NCBI GenBank assembly: GCA_900088475.1
Contig: FLMG01002084.1
Span: 1 to 47,879, forward strand
Origin: Hyphochytrium catenoides
Taxonomy: Eukaryota > Protista > Hyphochytriomycota
DNA: 47,879 nucleotides
Direction: 5' to 3'
Part shown: piece after piece, positions 9,009 through 47,879 of the stretch
Position numbering within the stretch: the stretch's first letter is position 1
Layout: the number at the start of each line of letters is the position of its first letter
Made by a program: the position numbers and the translations under genes
The notes under the pieces: model-generated
The model's input: the letters and a program-made list of their open reading frames with translations, nothing else
What the model was told of the DNA's origin: nothing
Databases searched by the model: none

Positions 9009-9299
9009 ACTTCCTTGCTACTTATTGATAAAGCACCTCCTCTTGGCCGATAAGTTGATTGGGAGCCTTTCCTCTATTAGTTAACCTCGGTGCCACGCCA
9101 CGGAGAGTGAAACTTTGCTAATGAGGAGCTGGATGTCAATGGCTTTTGAATAGATATGGTAAATCTGAGACTGGCCTTGACCTTTTCCTTGGACAATTCA
9201 GTCGGCGCCCAGACTGGGATGATGCCTGGAAAGATCTTTCAGCTTCTGAAAGCAGTACAGTACAGTAGCAGAAGGTTCTGAGGACATGAGAGACAACGC

Positions 9300-9300
<1 letters not shown>

Positions 9301-9338
<38 letters not shown>

Positions 9339-9509
9339 AACGAAGAAAAAGAGAGAGCAGTAAGAAAGAAAGACAGAGGGAGAGACGGAGAATGAGAGAA
9401 GAGAAAGAGTGAGAGAGAGTGAGAGAAGGGGAGAACGAAAGAGAGAGAGAGAGAGACAGAGAGACAGAGAGAGAGAGAGAGAGAGACAGAGAGACAGAGA
9501 GAGAGAGAC

Positions 9510-9550
<41 letters not shown>

Positions 9551-9590
9551 AAGAAAAAGAGACAAGAGACAGCAAGAGACACGAAGGGAG
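9301..9590. repeat. (GA)n/GACA compound microsatellite (CT-rich on the sense strand of the TMEM198-like gene)
   Basis: Seen directly. Confidence 0.9.
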
Positions 9591-9801
9591 GATGACGGCA
9601 GTGGTGGCGGCGGCAGACATAGACACAAAGTAGGAACGAAATGGGCAAACTGGATCTAGTTATAAGCTTTGTGAAGTAAGACACTAAACCATTCCGATCG
9701 AGGATCAGCGGGCTTCCTCTGAGTATATTCCTGTTACCTCTCGTTCTTATTAAGAATATGATGAGCAATCTGTTTTATGTCCTTGGGTTTGAATCTCGCC
9801 T

Positions 9802-10846: not shown

Positions 10847-11959
10847 GCGTCATGCTGGTGTTTCCCTGGCGTCCTCACATTGTGAAGCCCACTCGTCCTC
10901 CTATCAGATCTTCCATACAGGTATGAAAGTATACTACCGCAGGTTACCCTTAGGTTATTTCCAATGCCCATGAAACCTCAAGTGAAGAGGGATGCGATTG
11001 AAGCGCTACGAGTCCCTCTCTTGTACACGATCAATTAATGATGGCGTCCCTCTCCAAGACGAAGAAACCCTGCTATTGTTGCAAGGGAAGAGGAGCAGCA
11101 TACAGGAAAATAAAAAAAAAGAAGAGAAAGGAATGCAGAGGTGCTGCAATGGCGGGCAAGCGCGCCTTTGGCTGCATGTCAATCTAGCCCACTCGGACAA
11201 CTTACTCGAGCGCAGGAGGCGTAGCACAATTGGCCAGGCATAACTGGGTAGGGACCGCTGCAGTGGTAGTGGACAAAGAGGATAGAGACTAAATTATCCG
11301 CCTCCTCGTTTCAGTTCGGTCCAGGTAGGAGAGCAACTCAATACCTCCTTAGAACGAACGTGCAGAGTATACATCATTCACGTGCAATACTTGCGCAGTC
11401 AATTACTAGAGAGGAGGCACTCACAGAAACCATGTAAGCTGGGACAGACCGGGGAGGAGCAACAGACCACGTCTGTTGAAGACCAGATCTGCAGCTGGTA
11501 GCAGCGGACACAGAGAGCTACATCTAACGGAGGCAGAGACCAAGTGGATGCGAAGAAGAAAGAAGAGGAAGGTCATGAGGTGATGGACCACCATGAAAGG
11601 ATCCAGGCAGGACAATTCCTATGACGGTGCAGTGAAGCGGTGGATATTCCGTAATAGAGCCCCATATATTCTTGATAATAATCAATCTGGAGAGCTTTCG
11701 GCTTCAAGTGAAGAAAGATCTGGCTTGAGGGTACCGGTGGATGGGCTGAAAACCTTTGGGGCGTAGCATTATCTCTTAGGGGATGGGTGGGTCCAAAAGG
11801 TTGTGGCTCAGAGGTGAATGAAGGTCAAGGCCTCAAAAGATCCAGTGGCGCTACCTGTAACAGTAACAGGGTTATTATTACTGGGGATGACGGGCCCCAG
11901 AGCAGAAAGGCAACTGAAGGGCAACCAAGGGGATGCGGCGATCCTAAGGTACAGAGCGG

Positions 11960-11979
11960 GTGAGAGGGCCAGAGAGAGA

Positions 11980-12025
<46 letters not shown>

Positions 12026-12320
12026 GAGAGAAGAGGGAGAGAGAGAGATTGATTGATTGGGGTCGAGACAGAGGGGAGAGAATTGGAAGAAAGAGGGGAG
12101 AGAACGGCGAGTAAGTGATAGAGAAGAGAGCAAGAGAGAGAGAGAGATCGCGGTGACTGATAGAGGATGAGAAAAAGAAAGGAGAGAGAGAGAAAGAGGA
12201 GCGAGAGAACGTGAGAGAGAAATAGATCATGGCTATAAGAAGGGTTGACGCAGACAGAGGAACGGTAGAAATACATGCAAAGGGGAAGGAGAGCGAGAGA
12301 GAGAGAGAGAGAGAATAATA
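11960..12320. repeat. (GA)n-rich purine tract upstream of GST
   Basis: Seen directly. Confidence 0.85.
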
Positions 12321-12595
12321 GAAGAGCCTTCGAGAAACGGAAGCAAGCAAGAAGGAGAAGCCTGCGCCTTTGCTGGCTCCTTTCCCTTCCGTGTATTTTT
12401 TATAGTTTCCTACAGGGCAGAGGGAAGTGGGAAGGAGCATTAGAGGTAACGAAGAAGCTAGTAGAACATTCAATTTCTGGGGTCCTCATTAGCTCTGGCA
12501 GCTTATCGCATCATCGAGCTCATCGTCATTTCTTTGCTTGCCGCAGACCTCCGAAGCCTTAGTAAGCCACAAAGATCTTCAGCGGAAGACTCAAT

Positions 12596-13686: not shown

Positions 13687-16619
13687 GGGTCCATACCTTA
13701 TTATAAATTATAAACACAGACAGTGAACTCATCTTTGCTCCTTGCCAAACCCATTGTAACCTGCCGTCTGTGAGGGTGATACCCGTTGATAGACGTTGGC
13801 TGGAAGACACATAGTGATACCACTGATCGGAGCCGCAAGTAAACAATAACAGCTGGCAGGCTAGAGCTTTAGCAGGCTCACTGCAAGAATGTAACCCTGA
13901 TCGTTAAGGGGCCATACGGCTTGGTTATGACCTTCTCCTGATCAGACTACCCTCAATTTTGGTAGTCCATGCTCAGGAGGGAAAGTGCTCTTTAGCCCGT
14001 GATCTCATGATGAATGTGTGTCACACGGTAGCGATAACATTTTAAGTGATGACAGCAATGGAGGAAGTCACTGGCTGCTATGTAGGCAGGTGTGACCTTG
14101 TTTTTATATAAAGATGTATGTGGGATCCGCAAGATCCGATCCTGAGCTTGATCACTGTCTGCAAGGAGAAGTAGATGGTACGAAAGGGCAGTAGGGCCGG
14201 CCGACTCGTTGTCCGTCTTATAGACTAGCCCCAAATCGTCCCTTATCCCTTGCATAGGGGAGGATCGCGGAAATGGTCGGACGCCATAGGATAGCAGATG
14301 CGCTAAGGCAACTGACTCAGAGCCCCATATCTTCGGCCAGGGGTTGACGCTAAGCCAAGCAGACCCTGTCCACTGCCTTCACACTTCAGCAGGCTCGTGT
14401 CGGAGCAGTGCTGCAGGCCCTAGGAGGACCTGAGTAGTGCAAAGCGCAACAAATGCTAGGAGACTAACAGTAAGAGTATGAGAGGAACATTAGACTTCCT
14501 CACTCTGGAGTAAGTGCCCGACAATGGGCTGTGACAGGATCACAGAGGTAACCCTCGCTTCCTTCTTGCTCACGCCCCAATCATCGTCTTTCAATAGACT
14601 CCCAACCTCAACCAACGGGCTTCTGGTTACACTGCAAGTTCTCTAGAGGACACTGCAATGGCGGCCAATGGCTAGGGTGGCCAGAGGAGGAGAAGAAGTG
14701 ACATCGTCAACGATACCAGGGGTGCTTGGTTATTAGTTGACTGTGTATTCTTCATTATAATAAAGGTTGAGGTCCCTTTCACTCTCTTCTTAGACCCAAA
14801 GTGCCCTTGCTTCACGCATGCCGGCCATCCCTCCTCCGGTTCTAGTAGCATGACGATGCTATCATCGTCCTCTATAGCTCCTCAGCTGCTACTATCTCAT
14901 CTCACCCTGAAATTGATAATAGACGAGCTAAGAGCAAGAGAGCAAGAGAGTTCCTTTGCTTCGTACTATTTTGCCTGTTGACGACACCCATGAGACTTCC
15001 CAGTCGGCTTTTACCTTGGCCATGAAGTCTCAATAGTAAGGTATGATCGACCAGGCTGTACTGTCTGCTCAAGGTCTTGAGTGCCAGTTCCAGTGCGGTT
15101 CTGAGGATTGCAAGGCGACAGGTCCCGGAAAGCACTCTTCGAAGGAACAGTAACTAGACGAGTGCAGATGAGTCCTCATTGAAGGAGACAAACCAGCAGA
15201 GCCAGGCCACTCTTATCCTCCCTCGTCTCCTCCATCAAAGGACGGTACCGCAGATACTATCACGTATCAGTGGCATGTGCCAGGCCTGCCAGCCGATGCT
15301 TGCTTCTCAGGTGGGTCTATGCTTTGGCCTCGGTCTCCTCCTCTTGTGGTGTGCCCACTAGTTGAGCAGTGATGAGTCCATCACCTGTTCGCTGCTTCGC
15401 CGCCTCTAAAGATTACCATGAAGCTTCTCAACCCCTGATTCTTCTCAATTGGCAAAGGAGAAGAGTCTGTTGCGCTATAAACGCAGGAAGACCAACTATA
15501 TTTGTAGCGTCTGCCACTTTGTTGTAGGGCTCCCCCTAGGTATTCTCGGACTAGATGGTTCTGACTGCATATAATGCCTGTCTTGGTTGCACATTGTACT
15601 TCTTACTTTGGGGACGACTTTGATTTCTTGTGTCAGCCCGGAGCTACTTTCGTGTTCACGACTTTCCGTTACATGGCACAGTGCATTGGTGAGACTCTAT
15701 CATTAGCAGGGAGTTCTACTGATAGGTGCAGACAGGGTCGAGAGTGGGAGGACATGCTTGGGCTGCCAATGGATAGCAGACCAGGAACTGGCTTCCGGCA
15801 AGGAGTGACAGCTCCTAAAACCTCCTAAAAGTAAGAATAACTCTTGGGTTTTCGGCCCCAAATATGATGGAACTTAGCACTTGTGGAGGCTAGACAGAGT
15901 TTCCTGCTGAACTACCGAAAGAGGAAAAGGATAGGAACAGCCAAAGGCAGCCAAATATATTGCGATTATGTAGGGAAGACTCTTCCTATCTTTCCAGGCG
16001 AACTAGTTCTACTCCTTGTTAACCTCGCTATCATCTTCTGAGAGATAACAGAGCTGGAGTAGAAGTTATCGTCCAATGCTCCCTCTTGTCCCTAGCCTTC
16101 TCTTCACAAAGAAAGGAAAGGACAAGAGGATGACCTAACTAATCTTGGAAAGACTTGGATGGGAGGACAGTGATTCACACCCATAATGAACTAGAGCCAT
16201 GCAGCTTAGGAAGTTAGCCCTCGTTAGTGAGGCTGAGGATTGGGTTCGTCGGACGGCAGCCTTGAGAGCGAAGAGATACGTACAAGGCCGAACAGACCAA
16301 GAGAGAAGCAAGGAAGACAGAGCAGGAGCCAGGTCACGATCTCTGGGGACAGTAATACAAATGCTGCATTGCTCGTCTAACAGATCCTTTCCTTGTTGAA
16401 GGTATCGCAAGTGGTATTTTCCCTGATTATAAGCATCGGAAAGGTATTTGAAATAAACACCTACAACTGGAAGTTTTCAACTTGATGTTTCTGTGTTTGG
16501 CTTGGTCTTGGACTATCAGCGTGTGTTTGAGGGTTAAATGTATGGGTAAACAGAGTTGTGTGTAGCCGTTGCTACAACACGGTTCAGAACCCAAGAACCT
16601 ATTCCAATACGGGTACAAG

Positions 16620-16656
16620 CAAGGAGAGAGGGGGAGTGAGGGGAAGAGGGAGAAAA

Positions 16657-16694
<38 letters not shown>

Positions 16695-17060
16695 NNNNNN
16701 NNNNNNNNNNNNNNNNNAGAGAGAGAGAGAGGGGGAGAGGGAGGAAGGAAGACAAAAGGAAGAGATGTTCCTACTAAGAAATGGAAGGAGAGAGCAAGAG
16801 AGAGAGAGAGAGAGAAGAAAGAGGCTGACTGAATCTGCAAGAAAGTCTAGTGAGATTTGATTTGAAGGCAAAGAATGAGAAGAGAAGAGACGGAGTGGTG
16901 TAGAAGAGGAGAGAAGAGGACAGGAAGAAAGACAGGAACAGACAAGAGATGACAAGGAAAGAAAGACCATAGTCAAGGCAAAGAATGAGAGAAAGTGAGC
17001 AGAGAGAGTGGACATGCCCCACCATGAAAGAAAGAACCAGGAATAGAGAGGAGAGAGCAC
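16620..17060. repeat. (GA)n-rich tract with assembly gap (N 16695-16717)
   Basis: Seen directly. Confidence 0.85.
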
Positions 17061-18422: not shown

Positions 18423-20144
18423 TCATAAGCCGAGCTTGGTGGCAGCCTTCTGCGCTTGCTCCCAGAAGACAAAGGTAAAGATAGTATGCGGACCAAGCCG
18501 GAGGTAGTGGGCCAGCCAGCCCTTGTAGAATCCTTTCACGCCTTCAACGCGGGCTGTCTTAATAAAACAATCGAGAAAGCCGTTATACAGTGTCCCTTTG
18601 CCATTTACCACCTACAAAGCAGCGAAGTCTTAGAGGAAGGAAATTGTTATGGAAAGCAGCTGAAGCTCCCAGTTTACCTTTTGACTGTATAAGCGCGTTG
18701 ATACAACGTCAAATGGATTCATCGTGGTAGTGACGACAAGACCAGTGATAAGGCTTGCTGTGAGACGCGGAAAAAGGACTTTAGCAAGGGCAGGGGATGC
18801 TTCCGAAGCACATTCCTCTGAGCACTACCTGCAAAATGGGCGTATACGTTGTCCTCAAAAAACGGCGTTTTCAGCACCATGTGCTTGATAAAATCATAAG
18901 AAGAGAGCTGAGTGGCAGAACCAACCTGTGGCGGAATAAATGTCAGCATCATTTTGTCGCTCTTAGGACGATGAAGCTCTGATCTTACCGCAACACGAGG
19001 CACTGCAGCCGTGACACCGCGAAAGAGACCCGCCACCCCATCAGCCGCATAGACCTGCCGAAGTCCGTCTACCTACCAGTAGTGTTGATAGGATAAACGA
19101 AGGTTGTTTATGCCAAGGATCAAGCACCAAGTTATGGCCAATCAAGCGAGCGTACCAGTCCTTTATAGTGGTATTGCTTCGTGTCTGCAGTTGCTGCTGA
19201 GCCCTGCGCCTGTAATCGTGCCTTGATTAGGAAGAAAGGAGACCCCACAACGGCTCCGGCGGACCCTAAACGGAGAAGTGTGTCAATAATATTCGGGAAT
19301 GACGTCTCCAGTCAGGTGAAGCCTAGCACATACCAGATAGTGCGGCTGCAAGCATATTCTTCAGTAAGCTAAGGGCTGTGCCCTGCTCTGTAGAGCCGAT
19401 GGCCTTCTTCAAAGGCCCATACATACCCAATCTCACGCCGTTCATCATGGACTTTAGGGTACATCAAGAACACATAAAATGGGTAACATTAGTCATTGAT
19501 TGGAGCTTGTCACTACTAGGAGTGAGGTCAATACGTGCGAGGAGATGAGATAAGGCAGCGAGACATGGATGACAGAAACAATACGAGCCAGAGAGATGTC
19601 AGATATAAAGATAGCTGTGGAAGGGATAAAGACTATTATGAAAAGGTTACAAGTCTAGAGCCGGAGTGAGAGCAGGGAGAGGAACGAAATGAGGGAATCC
19701 AGAACAACGTCGACGTAGTAATAGAGCTCGAGAGTGGAGGAAACAGGATCCAAGACAAGGTCAAGGGTCACCTGATAGGCTATTCCCGGGGTGAGACCTC
19801 TTTGGATACCTCTAACCCCTTCAGTCTTTGTTATGACGTAGAAGGCATGAAGGGCATTCCTATACGGTCGAGCGCCTCCAGCCGCTACTAGCTCGCCCTA
19901 CGAAACATATCTATGAGAGACACATACGTTGTTTGATTCACACCCTTGAAGATCAAACCTGAAGCTGCATTCGAGTCTTGACAGTTTCAAAGGGATTGGA
20001 GAATACGCAAGCACAGCTGGTTGCGACGGCACCTAGCATGAATTCTACCATCAATGATCTAGGTTGTTTCACCGTGACGGGGCCTTGGGAAGGCGCAGCC
20101 TCGCCCGGGGAAGGGCCTCTGGCGGATAGCGCAGTGGAGGACAT
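18423..20144 (-). CDS. Mitochondrial carrier of the OAC1/SLC25A34/SLC25A35 (oxaloacetate/sulfate) subfamily, 8 exons
   Basis: The spliced product has three carrier signatures (NPFETVKTRMQ, SPFFLIKARLQ, NPFDVVSTRLY) and subfamily motifs AYQSMMNGVRLGMY, RVAVGSATQLSSY, GFYKGWLAHYLRLGPHTIFTFVFWEQ. All 7 introns are GT-AG. Confidence 0.92.
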
Positions 20145-21115
20145 CGTGACGGCTACCCTGCGAGTGCCTTTTAAAGGAGCGTCGCAGACAGTGCCTCCGA
20201 AGATGAGGGATGTTCGAAGGGATGCCGATGACAAAGGTTTATAGACAGAAAAAGTTTCAACAGGTATTCCTTGCACTCATCTTCCTTCCGACAGTCATGT
20301 CCACGGGAGATCCTTGAAAGTTGCCACTAGCGAAGCCTAGTAATAGAAAGACTGAGAGGCGCCCGGCAAGAGCTTGAGATTCCAATGGGACTAATGTTGA
20401 GCTCAAGAAGCGAGACTTCACGGTGGTTGATGCGGAGCTTCCAGCTTTGTGAAGCTTCAACATTATTTGGGGCGAATCCGTCCATCATCGTTATGATGAG
20501 CCCCGATGTCCCGGAGGAGGTCTGGTGAGCCTTCAAGATCTGGATAAAGGTATGGGTCAGTGCTGCTGATAGTCCTATGGTTTCCGTCACTTTGGCTTAT
20601 TCAAGGTTAACGTGGATAATTTAACTCTAGCTAAAAAGCACTAAAGGAAGACTCCATTAACATATCTGGATAAGCCACATATTTGTCGGTTAGCGGCTCT
20701 CCATCAGAAAGTGAAGGTTGAAGGACCAGGAAAAGAAGAGTGGGGTACGTGGTCATGGAACCTGATAATACTCCGAATAGGAAGCCTCACTGATAACATT
20801 ATTCACTCTTTGTCTCATTTCTTACCCAATCCTTCGCCGGGGCTGGTGGTTTTGTTGGTCAAGCTCTGTGTTCCTGAAGATTTATCGCGATGTCCGCGCT
20901 CCGTTATCACTCGCGGCAGATGCAGTTTGCAGACCCCGCAGTCAGAGCAGCGCGGCTCGGTATTTATCGGTATGTTCGCCCAGTAGATATTATCGCCACC
21001 ATGAGCTCTAGACGAAGCTTGCAGTCTGCAAGTTCTATCTATGCGGTGTGAGGAGCAACTCACTAACGAGACAAGGGCGGGTGATGCAAGTGTTTAGCAG
21101 TGAGGAGGGCTCTTA

Positions 21116-23270
21116 ATGGGTGTTTGCGCATCTAAGGACCATGAAGGCCTGGATGAGGGCCTTCGTATTCCTCGCCATGAGTTAAGAAGCTTGCTCCGGC
21201 TGCGTGATGCGACTGAGGGTGAGAGCACAGACTGGACCTATCACCACATTATCTGGCACGGTAGCCACCATGTAACCGATATTGGGTGGAAGGATAACGA
21301 TGATCCTGCCACCTGGAATGGCATCGTACTTTGCTCGGACCCACCCTACCATGTGAAGGAGATCAAGTTCTGTGATAGAGGGCTTACTGGTTAGTGCTGC
21401 CAGCTTCAGCTCGAAGGGGTCTGGGTTAGACCTGTGTCCATGTCTTTATGCCTACTCTTCTGGAGATCTTCGAGGAAATGCAATGAACTTGTTTAGCTCA
21501 GTTTGCTCATTCTATGCCAGGCAAAATACCGAGGCCTTTCCCCATCGGGATGGGCGAGTTGCTTGTGCTCAACCTGTCAAATAACAGACTGGAAGGTACG
21601 CAAAGGAAGTGGGTCTGCGAAGGAAGAACGCCCTAATCAAGACAAGAACGAGGCAAAGCACAGAGATAATTCGAAGCTTTTATTGACGAGGAACGAAGAC
21701 AGGCTTAGCGATGACGGCGGAACGGAACAGTAGGGAGAGAGGCAATTGGAAAGGGAACAAAGAGAAAGAGATGCACGCTGAGCATTGCTGCAGGGTCAAG
21801 GGAGAGTTGGAAGCTTTGTTGACTTGAAACAAAAGGAACCTGACAATGACTTTGCCTTCACGCAAGGCAACATTCCTCGGTCCATTAGACACTGCCGAAA
21901 GCTCCAGGTGTTGAACGTGCGGTGCAACAAACTTTCAGGTAAGGCGCAGCAGGCTGTTGACAGGTTGTCTCTTCAGGCTTATCCCAGCTCGTCTTTCGCC
22001 TGCTTCCTTTGGCTCTTGATCTACTACGGCGCTAAGGAGTTCCGTAGCGCACTCTTGCCTCAGCAGAACCTTCTCTCTCTCGCACTATGAACGGGCGAAG
22101 GCGCAATGCTTATTCATTCGCGGGTCTCTGCTTTCCGACAGGTTATTTTCCTCGCACTGTTTTTAATATCCCAACGCTTAAGGAGCTCTACTTGGGGTAC
22201 AACCTCATAACAGGTAAGCAGGCGTCTTTCAGGTGTACCTCCTTCGTTCAGGTCACTATTCTTTCTCTGGGGTCCCGATTGGCACCATTGGCGCCTGCGA
22301 CTCTCCTTCATTCTCGCAGTTTGCTTTGTCCGTTTGGTATCCTCTTTTTGTTACCTTCTGCTTTCACGTCTCCTGAGACTGTGTCTGCAGGGGACATATC
22401 AGATAGGTTTGACGCCTTGCCGCACCTGGAGGTATTTGAAGCGTGCAGCAACAGACTGACAGGTGAAGTGTGAAAGGGAAGAGTCTGTCGCTTCTTTTGC
22501 TTACCTTTCGCAAAGCATGCGTTTTCCCTCTACTTCCGTGGGTGTCCTTCTAATGCCGCTTTCCACAGGCGACATTCCTTCCTCTTTGGGCTGTTGCAGA
22601 GGCCTTAGAATCCTATCTCTCGCCTCCAACCTGTTGTCAGGTAAAGACAACAGATTTGACCCCCGACCATGTCTTCCGGCATAACTAAGCCAACGTCTCG
22701 TCTCTCTACTTCTTCGCGTTCAGCAATCAGTAGCCTTACCTTACCCTCATTTGGCTTTACGGCTCAATGTTTTCATTCCCCGTCTTGACTGTGGGTCTTC
22801 TGACGCCTAGCGCCCTTCGGTTTCTTGTAGGTAGTATACCTTCGTCCTTTGAACAGTTGGCCGATCTGGAGGATGTCCGGCTGCACAATAATAGGCTAGA
22901 GGGAGACATACCGCTCTTCCTAGGATATCTTCCACACCTAAAGTACTTGTATCTTACACGGAACAGGTTAAAATGTAAGATCGCGCTTGAGCTCGTTCTG
23001 ACCTTTGTAACCCCTAGCAAATGACCTCTGCCCTGCCTTTTCGTAGATTTTCGCAACGTGGGCGGGGACGGAAGAGCTGTCATTCGCTGTCTGCAGGGAA
23101 AGCTTCAACTCCAGGGGATGAAGTTCTTCCGTCTTCTCTACCTCCAACAGTGCGAACAAGGATTGCTACCTCTTTCTCTTCTTTCTGAGGATCTCATAGA
23201 CTGCATTCTCAGCTTCTTGCAGCTAAATGGAGCTATAGACCCGGATAGCTCTTGGCCATCGCAGCGATAG
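21116..23270 (+). CDS. N-myristoylated/palmitoylated-type LRR protein with plant-type 24-aa repeats and a C-terminal F-box-like motif, 8 exons
   Basis: Exons 21116-21389, 21521-21595, 21867-21938, 22142-22213, 22391-22462, 22569-22640, 22831-22974, 23047-23270, all joined by phase-1 introns. Repeats follow LxxLxLxxNxLxGxIP. N-terminus MGVCASK, N-cap LLRLRDATEG..W...GW...TWNGI, C-terminus LSLLSEDLIDCILSFL. Confidence 0.9.
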
Positions 23271-23624: not shown

Positions 23625-26600
23625 CTACGTGAAGCGCACCACGCCTGCTCTCTTGGTGTTCTCCAATGATATCTTGTGCCCGAAGAGGTCTCTAATGTTG
23701 CTAATCTTATACTTAATCATTGTCGGCCGCTCCAGAGAAAGACCCCACGCAATCACATTCACGTCTTCCGGGAGACCCATGGGCCGAACCATCTCCGGCC
23801 GGAAGATGCCTGTAGATGCCAGAGAGAGAGAGAAAGAATAAACAGATGTGATGGATCGAAGATGTGAGACGACATATGGGACATCAAAGGAAGAGGCTAA
23901 GCTATCTCTCCTGATTTTTATGGCGCTCTGTCTTCTGGCTCTTCACTGGCTTCTAAATCCCCGCATCACACTCACTTCCTCTATCTCCTTTCCCACTCGT
24001 CTCGTCACCTTACCTGAGTTTCCTAGCTCCATCCATTTCTTCAACTCGTTAGAGTAACCAAAGATCTCCATGGAAGGCTCGGTGTACGGGTTGTATGCGG
24101 GCTTGAAACGGAGCTCGGTGATCCCAGTCTTTGCGAAAAAAGTCTGAATGGTACCAATCAAGTCTCCGAGGGAGAGATTGTAGTCCGCTACCAGCCCTTC
24201 AACCTTAAGGACCGATGAGAAACAGAGAAAGAGGAGAGAGATAGGACGTGCAAAGGAGAGGGTGAAAGGAAGATTGAGGGGTGAGATATTATATGTATAT
24301 ATATAGAGAGAGAGAGAATGACAAACAAAGTATAAGACAGAGGACACGGATGAAGCGGAGGAGAATAGGGAAAAGACGGTTCACGACGCAATGGCGACTG
24401 TTCAACATGCATACCAGCTGGCAGCCTTAAGGGGGGCAAAGGCTATGAAAGAGAACATGACATGGGGAACAGCGGCACACCACCTCCTCACCTGGTGGAA
24501 CTCGGCCAAATGGGTGGCATCCATCGTCTCGTTTCTAAAGACTCTATCGATACTGAAGTACTTCTTAGGAGTGAAGCCTCCGGGTTGCTAAGTTCAAATC
24601 AAAAGAGAGACTTGTCAAAAGACAACGACAGCAGCTGTGCAAGGAAGCCAATTCGAGCGAGAAGAGAGAGAAAGGATAATGCAGGAGAAAGGACACTAGG
24701 AGGGCTGCTTGACAATAGGAATGGAACACGTTTCGTAGAGTGCGTTGCGCGTGAAAGTCAGATGAGATTTCCAGCTTACGTTTGCGAGCTTGTACAGCAT
24801 CTGAGAGGAAATGGCGGTCGTGTGCGTCCTCAGAATATTCTTGGTCGCCTCTTCCCGCTTGAAAGGAGTCTGATATCTGGACAGGAAGGGAACAGGGTGT
24901 TAGATCCTTAACAGCTTTGGCCTCGCGCGTCCACGGGAAAGGCGCTTCGAGTAAAAGGAACAGAAAACCTAATCAGAGCCTGCTTTTCTTACCCTATCGA
25001 GCCATATCCTCCTTCCTCGTGGACTCTCTTCACTCTCTCATAATAGTCCTCGGGGAAGCTGATGCAGTGCTCTGGCTCTGTATAAAGAGAAAGCGTGCAG
25101 AAAGAGAGACGCAGCCAGAGAGATGAGATGATTCGTAACCACTAGCCTGAGGCACTTGACAATGTACGAAACAGAAACAGGGAAAAAGAGCATTGTAAAC
25201 AAAATAAGGCTAGAAGGTTCTTAGACGGCTGTGGCTAGATGGTTCCTTACTTTTGAGGAAAAATGTATCGTGCGCGTCTCTGGCTGGGTGGCTTTGCGGC
25301 TGGAATAAAGAGTCGAAGTTCCAGAAACTACTTTCTACCCAGCGTTGGGTCGGCATCTCCTCAAACCTGTACCGTACGTAAGAAAGAAGTTAAAGTCTCT
25401 AGTTGCCGAACTCCATGCCACCTTTTGTCATCCAACTCCCCGTTGCCTCTCTTGCTCTCCTTGGGATGTGCCCTACTCTGTCACATTTCCTTTCAGCAGT
25501 ACTTACCCCATCTCCATCAGGATTCTTCTGAACTCTGCTCGAACCTTCATCAAAGGATGAAGATAGCCACCGCCCACCTCTCGGCCAAGCGTCTTCAGAT
25601 TATACTCCTTGAACTTTGAATCTTTCCAGCTGCCACTGAGAGAGAAGACACCATTGAGGAACCCGGAATATAGGCAGCATTATTGATTAGGCGTCCGGGA
25701 AAAGACGAACGGGAGGTATAGGGCGGTAAAGCGGCCGAGATAGGTCACAAAGTACGCTCATCGTTCACGTTATGACGGGTGTGCTAAGTGGAGGTAGCAG
25801 TCTAGGCAGAAGGCAGTGGCCGCGGATGATCTGGAGCGCGAGAGATAAGTGCACAAAAGGCAAGCCGTAACTCAAGAGCTGGAGCTGCCGGCCGTGCTAA
25901 GAAAGATGGAGATAGGAGACACGACGTCGAGGAGTGATTGAGAGACATGGGGACCAGAAGCTCCATACTTGTCAAGCATTTCCTTGGTCAGATCTGCAGG
26001 CTGTTTCTTTCTTTCCAACGAAAAGTTGGGACCCTTCTTCACCGCATAGCCTTTCCGAGTCCTGTAGCAATATGTGAGGAAAGCTGACATAAGTGACCCC
26101 GACTTTGTAGGGAACAAGACTCTTTTCTAGCAGCCATTGACGAAGTCCTCTTCCTCTACTTCTCCTTGATGTGTCTCTCTCTCTCATAAGCCGTGCTCCT
26201 TTGAATGTTGGTCCTAGCTACTTACACTAATGTCACCATCTGTCTTCGCTTAAGAGTCTTTGCTTGCTCCCCATTGAGAGTATTTGGGTCGCCTCCTGAG
26301 ACCTTCAGTCGCTTAAGCAACTCAGCAACCTCGTCCACTACATCCTTCGTCTTGATGCCATGGCAGTGGGATCCATGAGCAAATAAGCATGAGGGAGGAA
26401 GAAGAAAGTAAGTAAACATGGGAGAAATGTTGGCAACGGTCAGCACCGAACAAGTGCATCTAAGGAAGACACAGTTTCCGATCGGTAAGACTAAGCGTCA
26501 AGGGTTATCAAGAAGTTGAGCGGTAAAACTGCCCAAGGACTCGCAAGATCAGGGCATCCTCCACGAGGAGTACGCCGAGGAAGTGAGAGATGGACCAGGA

Positions 26601-27180: not shown

Positions 27181-27789
27181 CCTTGCGAAGCCACCGGTGC
27201 AGCACTTTGCTCTGACACTCCTGCACTGGTGGTCTCGTGCTCCTCGACAGCACTAACCAAGCAGACAGAGAGAGCTTCTTTCCGTGATTGTGTCTCTCTC
27301 CTTTTCTTGTCTGGCAAGCGCGTAGGGAGGAAGACCGGACGGTGATGGATGCAGATGAAGAAGATCTTCCAATAATTGTGAAGCTTTTTGTCTTCAGCTT
27401 CGGTCTTCCGCGCCTGCTCTTGAGGTCGGAGCTCAACATTATTGCGATGATCGATGGACAAGACAGAGTAGGATAGAGAGATTGGCACTACGGAAAAAGA
27501 GATAGGACATATTGTGGGGGACTAGTTTTTTCTAGGTGCGAAGAGATGTTAGGTCAAGCGAGACAGAGGGGAGAGAGATGCAGGAGAGACAGTAAGGGAG
27601 GGAGGGGAGAGGGAGGATTCAGGGTAAAGTTCCTGTGGCTGGTGGGAAATAAATCACAACCATCAAATATGGTGATAACCAATGTCTATTACAAAATGAT
27701 AACCGATAGAGGATATAAACTAGCCGTTAAGGGCTATTGATTCGTAAAGAGACTTGAAGACTCCTTGAGATTGATGAGCCGTTTCGGGG

Positions 27790-27929
27790 TGACAGAGGGG
27801 AGAGAGAGAAGCAGAAAAAGAGAGAGAGAAAGAGAGAGAGTGAGGGGCAGAAAAAGAGAGAGAGGGGGCAGAAAAAGAGAGAGAGAGAGAGCGAAAAAGA
27901 GAGAGGGAGAGAGGGGCAGAAAGAGAGAG

Positions 27930-27960
<31 letters not shown>

Positions 27961-28090
27961 GAGAGAGGGGCAGAAAGAGAGAGAGAGTAAGAGAATGAGA
28001 GGGAGAAAGAGAGTAAGAGAATAAGAGGAGGGAGAAAGAGAGAAAGAGAATGAGTAGAGGGAGAAAGAGAGAAAGAGAGAGAGGGAGAAC
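27790..28090. repeat. Compound (GA)n tract with a recurring GGGGCAGAAA unit
   Basis: GGGGCAGAAA recurs at about 27844, 27865, 27913 and 27967 inside GA runs. Confidence 0.85.
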
Positions 28091-29137
28091 GAACGCTCAG
28101 GAGGAAAGAGACAAGCGAAGGTAGAGAGAATGTCAGGGGGAAGCAGAGAAATGGGAGCTGAACAACAAGAAGGAAAGAAGCGAGGTCTGGGGCTGCAGTG
28201 GGAGGAGGAGAGATGGACGGAGGAAAGGATCTTATCCGACAACGCAAGCAGAAGCTACTCGCAGGCTTGGCCACGGTTAACCATTATCATCTCCTTCTGC
28301 CTCTTGATCGCCCGCCATCACCACACTCCTCGCCGCAGCTGTTGGAGGGAAGTGGGGGATGAAGAATGATCTTCTAGGACGAGCAACATTGGGGAACAGA
28401 CCAAGGGAGACGAGACGGCAGGACAAGGAAAGAGAAGGAGAAGGACCACATAGAAGATGATGATGGCGCCACCAGCGATGGAAGCAAACAGGCTTAGTAG
28501 ATGAATAAAGGGGAGAAGAAGAGAAGGTAAGGAGGCCGCCCTGCCGATAGATACTTCATGTGCATGCCTTGTCTTCTACAACTTCTATCCCTGCCGCCCA
28601 GGACATCTAATGAAAATGGCTCTCACTATAGCTCAGCTGTCCGCTGCAGCACTGGTCCTCTGCTTCTGGTGTCCGCTCCTGATGATCGCCTAGCTATTGG
28701 TCCGTTCCTTTGAGTGGCAGCATCAGTAGCTTCGTCCTCCATCCTCTCCATCCTCCTCCTCTCCTTCTCTTCTTCTCTCACCTAGCTTCTCCTATGTCTC
28801 TTGGTCTCTAAGCTTTCTGGCGCCTTGTTCAACGAACTCCTTTAGCTCTTACTGTCCACTCTGATAGGAAGATGAGCACTTAAAGACCAGCAGAAGGCCT
28901 GCTTGCTGCTAATGATCCAAAGGAGAGCGCCTTTAACTAGGGAATAATAAGCAACGTTGAGAGAGATGCTGAAAGCCATCCGGCTGCTTGCTTCAAGGAA
29001 AGAAGATAAAGGACAGGATCATGATAGACGAAAGTCCGAAGAGGTTAGTCATCAGGCGCGCTCCCCTATATCAGCCAAGGAAGGGAAGAGGGAGATGAGG
29101 ATATGTCAGTCCGAGAGAGCAAAGCTTATCTGACCCC

Positions 29138-39825: not shown

Positions 39826-41231
39826 ATGTATACAAAGAAAGAGCTCAACAAGAACATCAGCCAAAGTTATCTGCACGTGGGAGATCCCTATGCAGATCCG
39901 GGGAAAATCGGTATGTAAGAGTCCTCGCCCAGCTCTGGCCCTCACTATAATGAAGGACAGTCCACAGCCATGCTATTACCTCTATCTCCTCGTCCTCTCT
40001 CCTCTCTGCAGGCTCTGTGCCGCTCTTCTCGCTCACACCGAGTCACTCTTGCTGCAGGCAAGAACTCCCGGTGGTCGGGCAAGCAGTTCCTTACATCTCC
40101 AGCCAAGGACACTTCGGGAGGCGGTGGTCTGTTTACCAAGTTATCTTATGTCTCAGACAAGTTTGCGGACACCAACTGTAAGTAAGGAGAGGCGAAAGAG
40201 ACACGTTGCAAGTGGAAGCACGAAGAGGAGAGAGGAGAGAACTATCAAGCACATTCTACAAGAGTGATCAAAAAGAAGGAAGAACGTTATGGGCTTTGTT
40301 CTTTCAAAGGAAGTAAGGAAGAGAGAACGTTGATTGTCTGGTGGTCAGAGGAGAAGAAAAGCTTATAGAGCGAGAAAGGCATGGGCGCTACGTTTTCCTG
40401 ACCTTCTTCTCCGACACTTCAGCCTATATAAAAACCCAGCCTCTCGAGGATAGACGGAATGGCTTCGGGTCACACGATGCCAGCCGCAGAGACGAGTTCA
40501 TGAACAGGATCCGCACAGAAGTCTACAGAGAAGTCCTCAGGGTAAGACCGTTCTCTCTTCTTACCTCTTGGCATTACTCACTGAGAGCTCATTAGACTCC
40601 TCCTATCGTCGATCCCACGGTCTTTGCCTCTGTACTGACAGTCCATCTGCCTTCCTCTTTGCTAATCTCTTCCACTGACTTATCACTCTCTTCGTCTACC
40701 ACGACGGCAATACCGATTAATAGAAAGAGCAAAAGGTCCAAGGCAAGTCTCTCTCGCAACTCGCCGAGACACTGGAGAAGCTCGAGAACCAGAAAAAAGC
40801 GAGAGAAGAGAGTGAAGGAAGCGCTGGATCAGGAGCAGAGAGTCCAGACAAAAAGAGAAGACCACCTTCTCCTCAGTTCCTCTACGACCTCGGCCGCAAT
40901 CGAGAGACGACCTTCGACCCCAAGACTAAGAGAGACACGTACTATAAACTCCACGGACAGGATCATCAGCGGGTGAGTGTGACTTTAACTACTTAAAGGG
41001 AAAAGAGGAAAGAAAGATCGATAAGGAGATGACCGGCACAATGACAATGCTCTCTCTTCTTTCCCCATTTCCTAACGTTTGCAGAATGTCGGGCAGTATC
41101 ATCTCTCCTCTCTCACCTACGGAGAGGGCTGTGAGGTCGTCGATGAAAGCCAGAAGAGCAAGTATTCCCGACTGAAGGCCACAGACAAGTTCTTTGACAG
41201 AAGTCACCTCGGCTTGCCTGGCAAGCAATAA
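39826..41231 (+). CDS. Conserved hypothetical, probably cilia/flagella-associated protein, 5 exons
   Basis: Exons 39826-39910, 40058-40177, 40423-40541, 40724-40972 and 41085-41231 give MYTKKELNKNISQSYLHVGDPYADPGKIGKNSRWSGKQFLTSPAK...YIKTQPLEDRRNGFGSHDASRRDEFMNRIRTEVYREVLRKE...FLYDLGR...DKFFDRSHL. The ciliary assignment is from recalled motifs (GDPY, GKQF, GFxSxDxxRRDEF) and is not verified. The ORF track does not show it as a single ORF. Confidence 0.8.
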
Positions 41232-43065: not shown

Positions 43066-43859
43066 TTATTCAAGAAAAGAGAGTCAGAGAGGGAGAGAAA
43101 GGACAAAAAGCAGAGAAAAGAAGACGTTGTAGAACGCCTGAGCATGAGGAGTACCAGCTCTTGTCTCCACTTGTTCTCTCTCGGATATGGGAAAAACGAG
43201 AGCAGTAGCGAGAGAAACCTCGGTCGTCCGGTGTATGCCTTTTTCTTCTTTTAGAGTAGCCCTTTTGGAGGAAGAAACGAAGAAATGACAAGTGTGGAAG
43301 GCGAAGAAGACCGCAAGAGGGAGAGAGAGAGAAAGAGAGAGAGTAAGTATGCTTCCGGTGTATCTTTCCGAAAGTGCTATTGAGCTTGCTTTCTTCTTTT
43401 TCTCTGGTGACGCGGTCACCAGGCGGCGGCGTTGCTGCAGAGGCGAGAAGATCAGAGGAAGAGAGAGAGAGGGGCAGAATGTAGAAGAGAGGGAGAGTTT
43501 CTGTTCACCAGTCTGTGGCATTGCCCTTCTTCACCGTTCCTCCTCTCTCTCTCTCCTTCTCTCCGTCTTCTCCTCTCTTGCCCTCTCTCTCCGCCGTCTT
43601 GTCCTGTCTCTCTACTCCTCGTCCTCGAGCCATCTGGATAACGCTGCGCTGTGGGGGCAAGCCCGCTGTACGCAGAAGTGCAGCTACGGGAGATGGAGGA
43701 TCCTTTCTCTCCTGTCTCTCTCTATCTCCCGTCGTCTACCTTATTATTTATGGCCTTCTTTTCTCTATCTCTTTCTCTCTTCTCCGATCACAACCTTGGC
43801 TTAGCAACTTTCGAATCAGGAGAGGAAGACGTTTAAAACAGGGCAAAAAGAGAACAAAC

Positions 43860-44044
43860 AGAGTGAGGGAGAGAGTAAGGAAGAGAGAGTAGACTGGGGA
43901 GAGGCAGAGCGCGAAAGTGAGATGGAAAGAAAGGATAGAAAAAGGAGAGAGAGTGAAAGAGAGAGAGAGAAAGTGAGAGAGAAAGTGAGAGAGAGAGAGA
44001 GAGAGAGAAAGCGAGAAAGAGAGAGAGACAGAGAGAGAACGAGA

Positions 44045-44090
<46 letters not shown>
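43860..44090. repeat. (GA)n tract between the CCAAT array and the membrane-protein gene
   Basis: Seen directly. A second tract lies at ~44390-44570. Confidence 0.9.
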
Positions 44091-44172
44091 GGTTGCTATC
44101 GTCCGCGTTGCTGTAACGGTCAGCGACACGATAAATGTTGACGGACTAAGATTTAGAACAGAATCCCGGCCT

Positions 44173-44257
44173 CTCATTGGCCAGAACAAATAGCAATGAG
44201 CAGCGATTGGCTGTACACTCTGATGATCCTCTCTGATTGGCTCGTCTCTGAATGGCT
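44173..44257 (-). promoter_or_regulatory. Array of three phased CCAAT boxes (putative NF-Y promoter)
   Basis: ATTGG at 44176, 44206 and 44236, exactly 30 bp apart and each followed by C. A variant CTGAATGGCT lies at 44248. Confidence 0.6.
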
Positions 44258-45419
44258 GGTCATGTCCTGTCGCTCGAGTCAGAGCCTTGGCCTGTTTCAT
44301 GACCTCTCACTCCTCCTGATGGCGGCGCGGCTGTTGCTGCCGCCGCGGCCGGAGTGAGCATCTCTGGACAGGTCACAGGCCTTGGGGAGACAGAGAGAGA
44401 AAGAAAAAAGAGCGGAAAGGTGTGAGAAAAGGGTTGAAAGAGACAGACACATTCGCACAGAGAGGGAGAGGGAGTGAGAGTGACAGTGAGAGCGGAGAGC
44501 GAGAGAGCGCGAGGGAGAGCAGGAGAGAGAGAGAGAGAGAGAGAGTGAGAGAGTTAGAGAGAGAGAGAGATGCAAGGAAGCCAACGTTAATGGAGATCAT
44601 AGCTTCAGACAGGGAAAGACATCTATTTCCTTTTTTCTGCAGCTAAGTTTGTCAGACCGTGAAAGAGCCATTATCGGGCGAGATCAGGGTGAGACGGAAG
44701 ATAAAACTGTGGATGGAGAGAGGGATGGACTGTCTAGTTCTGTCCGTACTTCGATTCCTTAGGGCTGCTGGTGGGAGTGCATGCGAGGAAAGTGAACAAG
44801 GAAGTCATTAAGTTACCCTTATGAATGAAAGACATTGAAGAACTGTCGTGATGGAGCACTCTTTACTTGCGGCACTTTGAACAGAGGGCGCGGCCTGCCT
44901 TATCTTCTGGCGGACGATAAATCAAAAGCTGACCCATGTTCCCGCCAAGGTGTCAGGAAAGGCTGGACAAAACAAAAAAAAAGTAGCACAGAAGGGACGT
45001 ATCGTGGCGCTGGGTTATGATCTTCTCTGAAAAGAGAGAGAGAGAGAAAGAGAGAGAGAGACGGACTTTGCTTGAGAAGGTAGACAAGCGCGGCCCCCGG
45101 GTAGATAAAAATAGAGAATGATGTTGCTTAGAGAGGAGGCAGTAAGTGTAGCGCTGGAGGACTGGAAAGCCCGGTTACCATTGGTAGAAGGTTGCTACCT
45201 ATGTCATCAATCATAGCTCGGATGCCTCAACAAAGGCGGATATTCCAGCTGGAGTAACAAATGAGAAGATAGGCCCTGCTGCCCGTCCCAACCTAGGATG
45301 CAGGAGGACAAGTGTACTGAGCTATTCATCGGCTGCTAATAAGATGAGAGTGACCAACAATAGCTCTCTTAAATTGTTCATCGCTGTATGTTGTATGCTC
45401 CTAGTAGAAGTGGGGACGG

Positions 45420-45650
45420 GAAAGATGGAGGAGAAGAAGGGGAGACAAGGAACAGAGAGAAAGGGAGAGAAGGGAGAGAGAGAGAGACAGAGAGAGGCAG
45501 ATAGAGAGAGAGAGACAGAGAGAGACAGAGAGAGACAGAGAGAGNNNNNNNNNNNNNNNNNNNNNNNNNNNNNNNNNNNNNNNNNNGGAAGAGAATGATG
45601 TGGATGGAGAGAGAAAAAACGAGAGAGAGACAGAGGAGAGAGGGAAGAAA
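45420..45650. repeat. (GA)n/GACA tract with assembly gap (N 45545-45586)
   Basis: Seen directly. Confidence 0.85.
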
Positions 45651-47879
45651 GACGTGGTGCCATTATATGGGTCAGACTCGGATGGTGAACCCGACCCTAA
45701 CGGAGAATGGAGGGCGCCCTTTACCTGCCTATTGTTAGTTGGACCAACAGTGTCGCAGAACGACAAGCAGACCTTATCAGACAGGAAGAGGATCCTTGCC
45801 AAGCTTGCACCAGAAAGGAATACCTTAGCTATTTCACTTCTTAGTATGCGCTTCGCTAAGTAGTAGAACCCCTTATTCGAGGCTCGGCTCAACCGGTTCT
45901 ATATATTCATGGTCATACTGAGCGGATAGGGGAAATGCTGGATGTCTGCGACTGTGTGAGCTCGATAAGCGTTCTTCATAGTACCACACAGCCTACCTTC
46001 AAGGAGGTGAGGTTATTATGCAACTGAGGTATGCCGGGATGAGAAGATGACAGAAGAAACTTCCTCTGAGAGGAGCTTTTAGAGGATTGACGCTCATCGC
46101 CAAGAAGAGACAGGACCGAGGACGTTGAGCTAAAGCTGAGAACCCCTTCTGAAGGTTGTGATGCACTGCATCTTACTATCCAATGCTGATTTCTTTCTGA
46201 GTTATCTGGATGACGGAGCCCATAGTGGCGGCATTAGTCAATGTCCTTACTTGTCAGGCAGGTGATCAGCTGCTGGAGACATATCTCAGGAGACAGTTCT
46301 CTGGCTCTGCAGCTCTACTATCTACTCGACTTGATATCCTTTCGCTGGCAGGCCATGGCTGGAGGAGAGAGACTTTCTCTGGCTTTGTGATCAGACAGTC
46401 AGACAAGGTCATGACCTCACGTTGAGGTGCAATGTTTGCCTAGTCTAGGTTGGCTATCAACCTCAACCATCCTATTGCTGCTAGGGTCAGTACTGATTGA
46501 TGCCTAAATAAGGATGACTGTCAAGCTCTTCAACTAAACAGTCAAGCTCTGTCGTATAGGCGACTGCGGCTATATTGACTTCTCATAACGTGAGCCTGTT
46601 GAGCTCTTAAAGCTCTGTCGTCACATGTCAGCAATATCCCTCAAAACGACTTCAATGTCCTCCTACCTCCACTGCTATTGAGTTCGAAGACCTTCTAGGG
46701 TGAAACCTTGGCAGCTCTGAGACTGCTTAGTACAAGTCGCCTAGGCATATGTCAGTGAGAGGCCGCTTGCGGCAATCTGTTAGACGCAGCAGTAAGAAGG
46801 CGATGATGTAGAATTGATGATGGTCACCGAGAAGCTGAATGGTCATATGATGACTAGCATGACCTTGTCTTGCTTGCTCTAGGATATAAGAAGAAGTCAA
46901 GTGTCAAGGACTGGGTCCCAAGCAAGGCTGATGGAGTCTATCGCCTCATAGACTCTTGACAGGGCAGCGGATGCAACCAGGCCTCAAGCCCACCGCTAGC
47001 TGCAAAGAGATCCACTCTTCTTCATGGCTCTCCCTTCCATGGGTGACGTCACAGGACTTCGGATCTGCAAGTATCGTCTCGCTCCAAGAAGAGCTAAGCA
47101 TTAGCCGCGCAAGGGTTCTATTGCTATGACCTGAGGTAATAGGAAAGGGATGTATCCTTGTCGAGCTCAGTATTTCAACACAAGATGGCATCATTGCCAG
47201 AAAAGAAGACTGAGAAAGAGAGCAGAGAGGCTAGGTAATCTTAGCTACAGAAGACGATAATTTCTTAGGAGGCCTCACAGAGGAGAGGAGAGAGTGCACT
47301 TCGCCCAGACCTTCTCTGCGAAAGGCTTTCCCTGAGGATAGTCCGACCTGCAAGTCGGTCAAGACACGCGTAGCGAGATCGAGATCTCATCTAAGACTAT
47401 ACAACCGTCAGGCTACCGAGGGTGGCCGCATGGGGCAGGAAGAGGACCATCAGCTGTAGATAGATTCAATAAGTAGACCAGTGTCTCCTTTGCCGAACTC
47501 CTCTTTGATTATCCGGGCTCGGGACAGCCCCAATCATCACTCTGAAAGTGCAGTCTCTGCTCTGGTCGCATGCCCTGTGGGTCTGCCTTAGCTCTAGGAA
47601 CTACTATGCCCACGTCGACATCTCACATGCTAGCGCCGCGTCAATGGTCATCCTCAAGTGATGCAGCTGGGCCCGCGCCGCCTTGGCAAGCAGAAGAATC
47701 TTGGGCTTGGAGGTTGGCGGCAACTGAACCTGCAGCCTGAGCCAAGATCAGAACCTGCAGGGCGACTCTTAAATTTACAACACAAATGATATTATGCCAA
47801 ACAGCCACGATCCACAGAAATTGACGGCACTTTATAACAAGCAATCTCTGAGTCAAGTAGAGGGAAATTTGTAGGTACC

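Follow-up and report, generated by a model that had tools for sequence, protein, structure and literature searches.

Is a leucine-rich repeat (LRR) protein that begins with an acylation motif and ends in an F-box-like helix a plain scaffold at the membrane, or could it be a tethered receptor that docks onto SKP1? This question is raised by a gene at positions 21116-23270 of contig FLMG01002084.1 of the soil protist Hyphochytrium catenoides, a hyphochytrid; the window analyzed here comprises 47,879 nucleotides (nt) of that contig, which is C773 among the 4,759 contigs of the 61.0-Mb assembly. The reading we prefer, at a probability of about 0.4, is that of a plain acyl-anchored cytosolic scaffold of plant-type LRRs, in which a helical tail would cap the solenoid and perhaps bind something else. 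SKP1 is the sole concrete candidate for such a partner, put forward by structure prediction, and docking to it constitutes the main rival explanation.

While a bacterial-style search for open reading frames (ORFs) returned no long ORF in this region, a eukaryotic gene on the plus strand is found there instead. It comprises eight exons (Table 1) with GT-AG at all borders, separated by seven introns of 72-271 nt that are in phase 1 throughout, and the spliced frame of 1005 nt yields a product of 334 amino acids (aa). Exons 2-6 encode one LRR apiece, 24-25 residues each, and exon 7 encodes two. This regularity of exon length and phase goes beyond chance, and the eight-exon gene is therefore real. 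Codon log-odds, for which approximately 4,700 codons from this genome's own Pfam-supported open frames served as the reference, amount to +0.11 per codon in frame for the whole coding sequence, compared with -0.28 and -0.61 out of frame. Exon 1, containing the acylation motif, a hydrophilic linker and the LRR N-cap, scores +0.135 and ends in the donor G/GTTAGT (a slash marks the exon border). As an observation on the repeat exons themselves, the length of exon 7 is exactly that of two LRR exons, suggesting the loss of an intron between two repeat exons; intron 7 is likewise exactly 72 nt long, and its translation contains no LRR.

Seven units of the form GxIPxx-LxxLxLxxNxLx, as counted in an earlier note made from the letters alone, stand in perfect register, each beginning with G-x-[IF]-[PS] and ending with N-x-L-x, and Pfam recognizes LRR_4 (9.4e-07) and LRR_8 (5.9e-06) on exon 7. 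Plant-specific (PS) LRRs are defined as tandem 24-residue units of the pattern LxxLxLxxNxLxGxIPxxLxxL, which all seven units display, and LRRs of this class are mostly extracellular in plants. The N-cap, also described in the earlier note, could be retained in part: residues ~20-91 resemble a plant LRRNT cap, with a helix followed by W-N-G-I-V-L-C and a first beta strand (...V-K-E-I-K-F), but LRRNT_2 was not scored by Pfam, exon 1 matched no Pfam family at E ≤ 10, and the disulfide pair of the plant cap is lacking, as its first Cys is missing and the cysteines are scattered and unpaired.

Investigating the N-terminus, we found residues typical of a doubly acylated protein. Substrates of N-myristoyltransferase (NMT) carry Gly2, a small uncharged residue at position 3, Ser or Thr at position 6 and a basic residue at position 7-8. 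The start MGVCASK provides Gly2, Val3, Ser6 and Lys7, and is thus a predicted NMT substrate with a palmitoylatable Cys4 close by; the genome encodes an NMT, with NMT_C matches on contig C625 scoring above the cut-off. The first 20 residues are hydrophilic, without a hydrophobic N-terminus, signal peptide or transmembrane (TM) helix, and the highest 19-residue Kyte-Doolittle mean (1.59) falls on the charged C-terminal helix and not on a TM segment. Both the acylation pattern and the absence of signal peptide and TM helix claimed previously are hereby confirmed, and the membrane-anchored cytosolic placement drawn from them fits the residues at positions 2, 4, 6 and 7 as well as the NMT gene. As far as can be read from the sequence, the protein is probably fastened to membranes by fatty acids.

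The class of the repeats might nevertheless point to the outside of the cell, since plant-type LRRs following an LRRNT-like cap are typically extracellular in plants. A secreted protein would require a missed upstream exon encoding a signal peptide, with MGVCASK internal or untranslated, and weak AG dinucleotides do occur between the upstream stop and the ATG at 21116. However, this stop is an in-frame TGA (21101-21103) only 15 nt upstream of the ATG, the AGs in between lack a pyrimidine tract, and the missing first cap Cys together with the unpaired cysteines fits a reducing compartment. Moreover, PGIP-like LRRs in runs of equal-length, frame-preserving exons, one repeat per exon, are known from the ROCO and type I LRR genes of the stramenopile Ectocarpus, whose products are presumed to be cytosolic (PMC3341825). 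Secretion is thus very unlikely.

For the acyl-anchored cytosolic scaffold that we favor, the parts would work together as follows. Myristate on Gly2 and palmitate on Cys4 would hold the protein against a membrane on its cytosolic side, where the arc of seven LRR units would bind a protein partner with its concave face, and the 74-aa helical tail would close the open C-terminal end of the solenoid and offer a second contact surface. A role in defense and the degradation of bound targets, both proposed in the earlier note, are pure inference.

Everything said about the tail hangs on one predicted splice, 22974/23047. In repeat position and phase the donor at 22975 (T/GTAAGA) agrees exactly with the six others, which argues for splicing at this site and against translation continuing to the TGA at 23022. 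Among the acceptors, the one at 23046 (ccttttcgtag/AT) has the best pyrimidine tract and a branch-point-like CTGAC 45 nt upstream, and the tail frame beyond it is free of stops for 81 codons, with a codon score of +0.081 that lies inside the coding range (0.04-0.23), compared with -0.37 and -0.27 in the other frames. On this basis we regard the modeled tail as probably correct. Were the 3' end wrong, the F-box-like string would be untranslated: intron 7 might be retained, with the protein ending in ...RNRLKCKIALELVLTFVTPSK at the TGA 23022-23024, or other AG acceptors present in the sequence might be used, either the one at 23016-23017, giving an intron of 43 nt and a stop after 9 codons, or the one at 23095-23096, leading into another frame with a stop near 23187. 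A search for RNA runs listed none, neither a homologue nor a paralogue backs the tail exon, and in some introns of the LRR gene one frame attains a codon log-odds as high as +0.06, which comes close to the score of the tail. Against these points stand the features of donor and acceptor described above and the coding-like open frame, while the frame entered at 23096 scores -0.03 and an intron of 43 nt would be far below the mean of 208 nt reported for H. catenoides (PMC5795050). A mistaken 3' end is accordingly unlikely, though clearly more to be reckoned with than secretion.

The tail was further compared with the F-box family as a 73-residue piece, the numbering of which is used from here on. 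Its AlphaFold2 (AF2) model, made from the single sequence, has helices at residues 8-22, 26-36 and 47-59 followed by a 14-residue coil, with a mean predicted local distance difference test (pLDDT) value of 62; the last helix is LSEDLIDCILSFL. In the earlier note the segment 23163-23219 had been matched to the first F-box helix with Ser in place of Pro. Both the hydrophobic register and the exchange of the near-invariant Pro are borne out, but membership in the family is not, and the segment comprises 19 codons rather than the 18 given there. Conserved positions of the form V-[CS]-K-x-W and L-W mark F-box helices 2 and 3. Only 16 residues, modeled by AF2 as coil, follow the motif in this product, so that helices 2 and 3 are absent and cannot exist here. 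These missing helices and the lost Pro are real deficits.

Profile searches gave the same picture. At E ≤ 10, hmmscan against Pfam assigned no family to the tail, be it F-box, F-box-like, PRANC or SOCS_box. Six-frame scans of the whole genome located 20 sites with PF12937 (E ≤ 0.01) and 36 with PF00646 (E ≤ 10), none of them in this contig; a sequence search of the PDB with the tail returned no match at E ≤ 10, and Foldseek with the AF2 model against the PDB yielded no match at E ≤ 0.001, nor was any of the weaker matches an F-box. A hidden Markov model (HMM) built from 12 F-boxes of this genome aligned residues 43-59 only, to helix 1, with 1.3 bits, a score equaled by 49 of 1000 composition-matched shuffles, and hhalign of the tail with the own-genome F-box profile gave P 0.007 and a probability of 5.5% over 17 columns, again helix 1. 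With an HMM of helix 1 alone the tail ranked 104th in a scan of 181,463 residues from six-frame ORFs. For residues 36-73, F-box clusters occupied ranks 2 and 4 of the named clusters in the ESM Atlas, with values of 0.82 and 0.78 that fall below the 0.9 needed. Judged by sequence and fold, the tail is not a member of the F-box family, and its likeness to helix 1 is real in register but statistically weak; the shared helix may be a product of convergence or a remnant. Since a helix of 17 residues is unable to reach profile significance, the negative profiles are weak evidence against a function.

Other origins of the tail were considered and rejected. A downstream exon supplying helices 2 and 3 would need a GT donor, of which the sequence beyond the motif has none, and up to the next gene no frame is F-box-like; a circularly permuted F-box is not indicated, as hhalign aligns helix 1 alone; and for a remnant of a ROCO linker no supporting match was found. 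Separately, the helix-1-only HMM gave 11.5 bits, equal to true F-boxes of this genome, to RFPDLLLRHFSLY at approximately 40382-40430 of the window (plus strand), a string outside every ORF of at least 40 aa and not among the sites of the PF12937 and PF00646 scans; either it matches by chance, or an unrecognized F-box gene has a small first exon there.

Several observations weigh against a tail that simply caps the solenoid. With 74 residues it exceeds the length an LRR cap needs, and in its last helix none of the conserved hydrophobic positions of F-box helix 1 is lost (L-S-E-D-L-I-x-x-I-L-x-x-L), a register that, expressed as a post-hoc pattern, recurs in 0.24% of shuffled tails. Furthermore, the complex of the tail with the organism's own SKP1, predicted from three chains (one for each SKP1 exon and, as the third, the tail piece of 73 residues), reached ipSAE values of 0.86, 0.83 and 0.80 (median 0.83), compared with 0.08, 0.02 and 0.00 for three controls. 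The predicted contacts connect tail residues 41-60, the helix-1-like part, and 19-34 with residues 64-75, 83-99 and 102-106 of the SKP1 exon-2 piece, which, going by human SKP1 and the Skp1-Skp2 structure, we take to be helices H5, H6 and H7, the core of the F-box groove.

These runs were consistent among themselves, with a partner pLDDT of at least 62 and a contact agreement of at least 84%. The calibration set of the predictor, in which 51 of 78 solved complexes attained the mark, as did 2 of 108 mismatched pairs with scores of 0.34-0.59, is one that a three-chain SKP1-tail job with a predicted exon does not resemble. The SKP1 contacts end at residue 106 of the 130-residue exon-2 piece, leaving unengaged a C-terminal stretch that is presumably helix H8, normally wrapping F-box helices 2 and 3. 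The complex model with the organism's SKP1 that the earlier note had called for was obtained and passed (0.83 against 0.08 for the best control), but the score shows likeness to an SKP1-F-box interface and not binding, and may reflect a memory of solved complexes. The SKP1 used is the best one in the genome, located on contig C3415 and encoded by two exons with an 82-nt intron inside the acidic loop. In total, three SKP1-type loci were noticed with PF01466, L003 on C3415 (102 bits), L004 on C1210 (70 bits) and L005 on C1638 (46 bits); the weaker two may have diverged as paralogues of SKP1.

If the prediction is taken at face value, the tail would be a working minimal SKP1-docking module, with its helix-1-like helix in the SKP1 groove and two preceding helices as backing, and the protein would be a membrane-tethered substrate receptor of a Skp1-Cullin-F-box (SCF) ligase or of a non-SCF SKP1 complex, in which the repeats come first and the docking motif last. 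In addition to a score above that of any mismatch passing in calibration and to contacts on the helices taken for H5-H7, this is favored by the full hydrophobic register with its hhalign P value, by the placing of two F-box clusters in the ESM Atlas, even if below threshold, and by the presence of SKP1, cullins and about 20-36 canonical F-box sites in the genome. Truncated C-terminal F-boxes of poxviruses still bind Skp1/Cul1, yet they keep two helices (PMC9414399), whereas helices 2 and 3 are both absent here. Against it, the pass may mean that the predictor remembers solved complexes of SKP1 with F-boxes, no profile was significant, the SKP1 stretch beyond residue 106 was not engaged, and the near-invariant Pro, which also touches CUL1, is replaced by Ser. 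Helix-1-like strings also occur by chance, for example the 11.5-bit, non-coding-looking site near 40382 in the window, there is neither homologue nor paralogue to show conservation, and the splice leading into the tail is a predicted one. The docking pass lifts this explanation from improbable to somewhat short of even for a translated tail; overall, we consider it a doubtful though serious possibility.

A different adaptor might also be addressed by the same helix. As a BC-box-like element, the tail would recruit Elongin C and a ligase of the Cul2/Cul5 type, and PLSLLSEDLI (residues 41-50) does fit the loose pattern [STP]Lxxx[CSA]xxx[AILV]; a single helix suffices for Elongin C binding in known BC-box proteins. 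This pattern, however, is present in 7% of shuffled tails, the SOCS_box profile found no match as noted above, and no Cul2- or Cul5-box follows the pattern by eye, making Elongin C recruitment extremely unlikely.

Searches for relatives leave the LRR protein without close kin. With exon 1, phmmer against 1.84 billion representative proteins, from which the H. catenoides proteome is apparently absent, as the query did not retrieve its own gene product, retrieved two spurious, internally repetitive matches, and in scans of metagenome contigs neither exon 1 nor the tail had a confirmed relative. In the 61.0-Mb genome exon 1 and the tail each occur once, and paralogues with the same tail, which the earlier note suggested looking for, were not found. 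The LRR pair of exon 7 has one other match in the genome (C2734, 10021-10155; 44% identity, E 7.7e-5), and the LRR gene is lineage-restricted. The matching site itself (L027 in G000) lies inside a stop-free frame of 1,720 aa, which suggests a giant, apparently intron-less LRR protein.

Table 1 Exons and sequence motifs of the LRR gene, given as positions in the window
Feature	Position	Strand	Description
Exon 1	21116..21389	+	274 nt; residues 1-91 and first base of codon 92
MGVCASK	21116..21136	+	Candidate N-myristoylation (Gly2, Ser6, Lys7) and S-palmitoylation (Cys4), read from sequence
Exon 2, LRR 1	21521..21595	+	75 nt; acceptor AG/GC, donor G/GTACGC, phase 1; unit GKIPRPF...LNLSNNRLE
Exon 3, LRR 2	21867..21938	+	72 nt
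Exon 4, LRR 3	22142..22213	+	72 nt
Exon 5, LRR 4	22391..22462	+	72 nt
Exon 6, LRR 5	22569..22640	+	72 nt
Exon 7, LRRs 6 and 7	22831..22974	+	144 nt (2 x 72); donor T/GTAAGA
Exon 8, predicted	23047..23270	+	224 nt; 74-residue tail (residues 261-334 of the protein) and stop codon (23268-23270)
LLPLSLLSEDLIDCILSFL, F-box-helix-1-like, Ser for Pro	23163..23219	+	19 codons; segment predicted to contact SKP1

Approximately 670 nt downstream of the stop codon at 23268-23270, the next gene follows on the opposite strand. By eye, 23943-24347 (minus strand) looks like an exon of a phenylalanyl-tRNA synthetase alpha gene, and on the other side 19953-20276 (minus strand) looks like an exon of a mitochondrial carrier (..FSNPFETVKTRMQLQ..); a functional link of these flanking genes to the LRR gene is not apparent. 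Elsewhere in the window, long (CT)n/(GA)n microsatellites give rise to spurious LSLSLS ORFs (9136-9768, 11808-12473, 16599-17060, 27720-28274, 43833-44300 and 45401-45892), and those at 16599-17060 and 45401-45892 contain runs of X that imply stretches of N in the DNA.

What makes this locus interesting is almost wholly the question of whether it docks onto SKP1. In the most far-reaching reading, an F-box remnant of one helix, placed in inverted order at the extreme C-terminus, would join two unrelated helices that precede it in a non-canonical module for SKP1 docking, carried by a plant-type LRR protein with dual acylation, and we hold this to be possible rather than probable. If true, the recruitment of a ubiquitin ligase would be tied to plant-type LRRs with a lipid anchor, in a lineage that is sister to the oomycetes, through a membrane-tethered SCF or SKP1-only receptor that would be the mirror image of the prenylated FBXL2 and a cellular counterpart of the poxvirus ankyrin repeat (ANK)-PRANC proteins. 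A lone helix-1-like helix, without the Pro or helices 2 and 3, would then serve as an SKP1 handle, and profile searches would be blind to such receptors; it would also be a cellular case of the layout with repeats first and docking element last, as known from poxviruses and SOCS-box proteins. If SKP1 is not bound, an ordinary orphan LRR protein remains, still a tidy example of one LRR per exon and of an acylated, cytosolic protein built from an LRR type that plants usually use outside the cell. In either case the combination of a dual-acylation start, cytosolic plant-type LRRs with an N-cap and an orphan helical tail that contains a look-alike of F-box helix 1 is new, while the parts are of known kinds.

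Several known systems resemble the protein in part. The type I LRR loci and LRR-ROCO genes of the brown alga Ectocarpus share the stramenopile background and the shuffleable LRR exons of equal length that keep the frame, and their products are presumed to be cytosolic like the present one (PMC3341825); however, neither a ROC-COR GTPase nor another Pfam domain follows the repeats here, and in place of an expanded family we find one distant match in the genome, together with an acylation motif and an orphan tail. The start Met-Gly-x-Cys-x-Ser-Lys followed by hydrophilic sequence, for which acylation is predicted in our case, is shared with dual-acylated MGxC peripheral membrane proteins, such as the plant CBL calcium sensors and the flagellar calflagins of trypanosomatids, but these and their kin carry EF-hands or kinase domains and not LRRs. 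SOCS-box and BC-box receptors likewise place substrate-binding repeats first and a short C-terminal helix for an adaptor of the SKP1 fold last, and the loose BC-box pattern is present here, unlike a SOCS_box profile match or a Cul box, and at the frequency in shuffles given above. The layout of poxvirus ANK-PRANC proteins, which the earlier note had invoked, is matched in so far as a repeat solenoid precedes a truncated, F-box-like element at the C-terminus; the first two F-box helices lie within PRANC (PF09372) in those proteins, while the tail has no PRANC match and one matching helix, and their repeats are ANK repeats, compared with LRRs in a cellular protist gene with seven introns. The FBXL type (Skp2, FBXL2) also combines an LRR solenoid with a helix of the register L-x-[DE]-[DE]-L-I-x-x-I-L-S-F-L, with SKP1 docking predicted for the present protein. 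There the F-box is N-terminal, of three helices and approximately 40-50 aa, detected by PF00646 and PF12937 and equipped with the Pro, whereas here a single helix at the extreme C-terminus, with Ser in place of Pro, matches no profile, and the FBXL repeats are 26-residue Cys-containing LRRs in contrast to the 24-residue plant-specific ones of this protein. FBXL2 is lipid-anchored too, by a prenyl group at its C-terminus.

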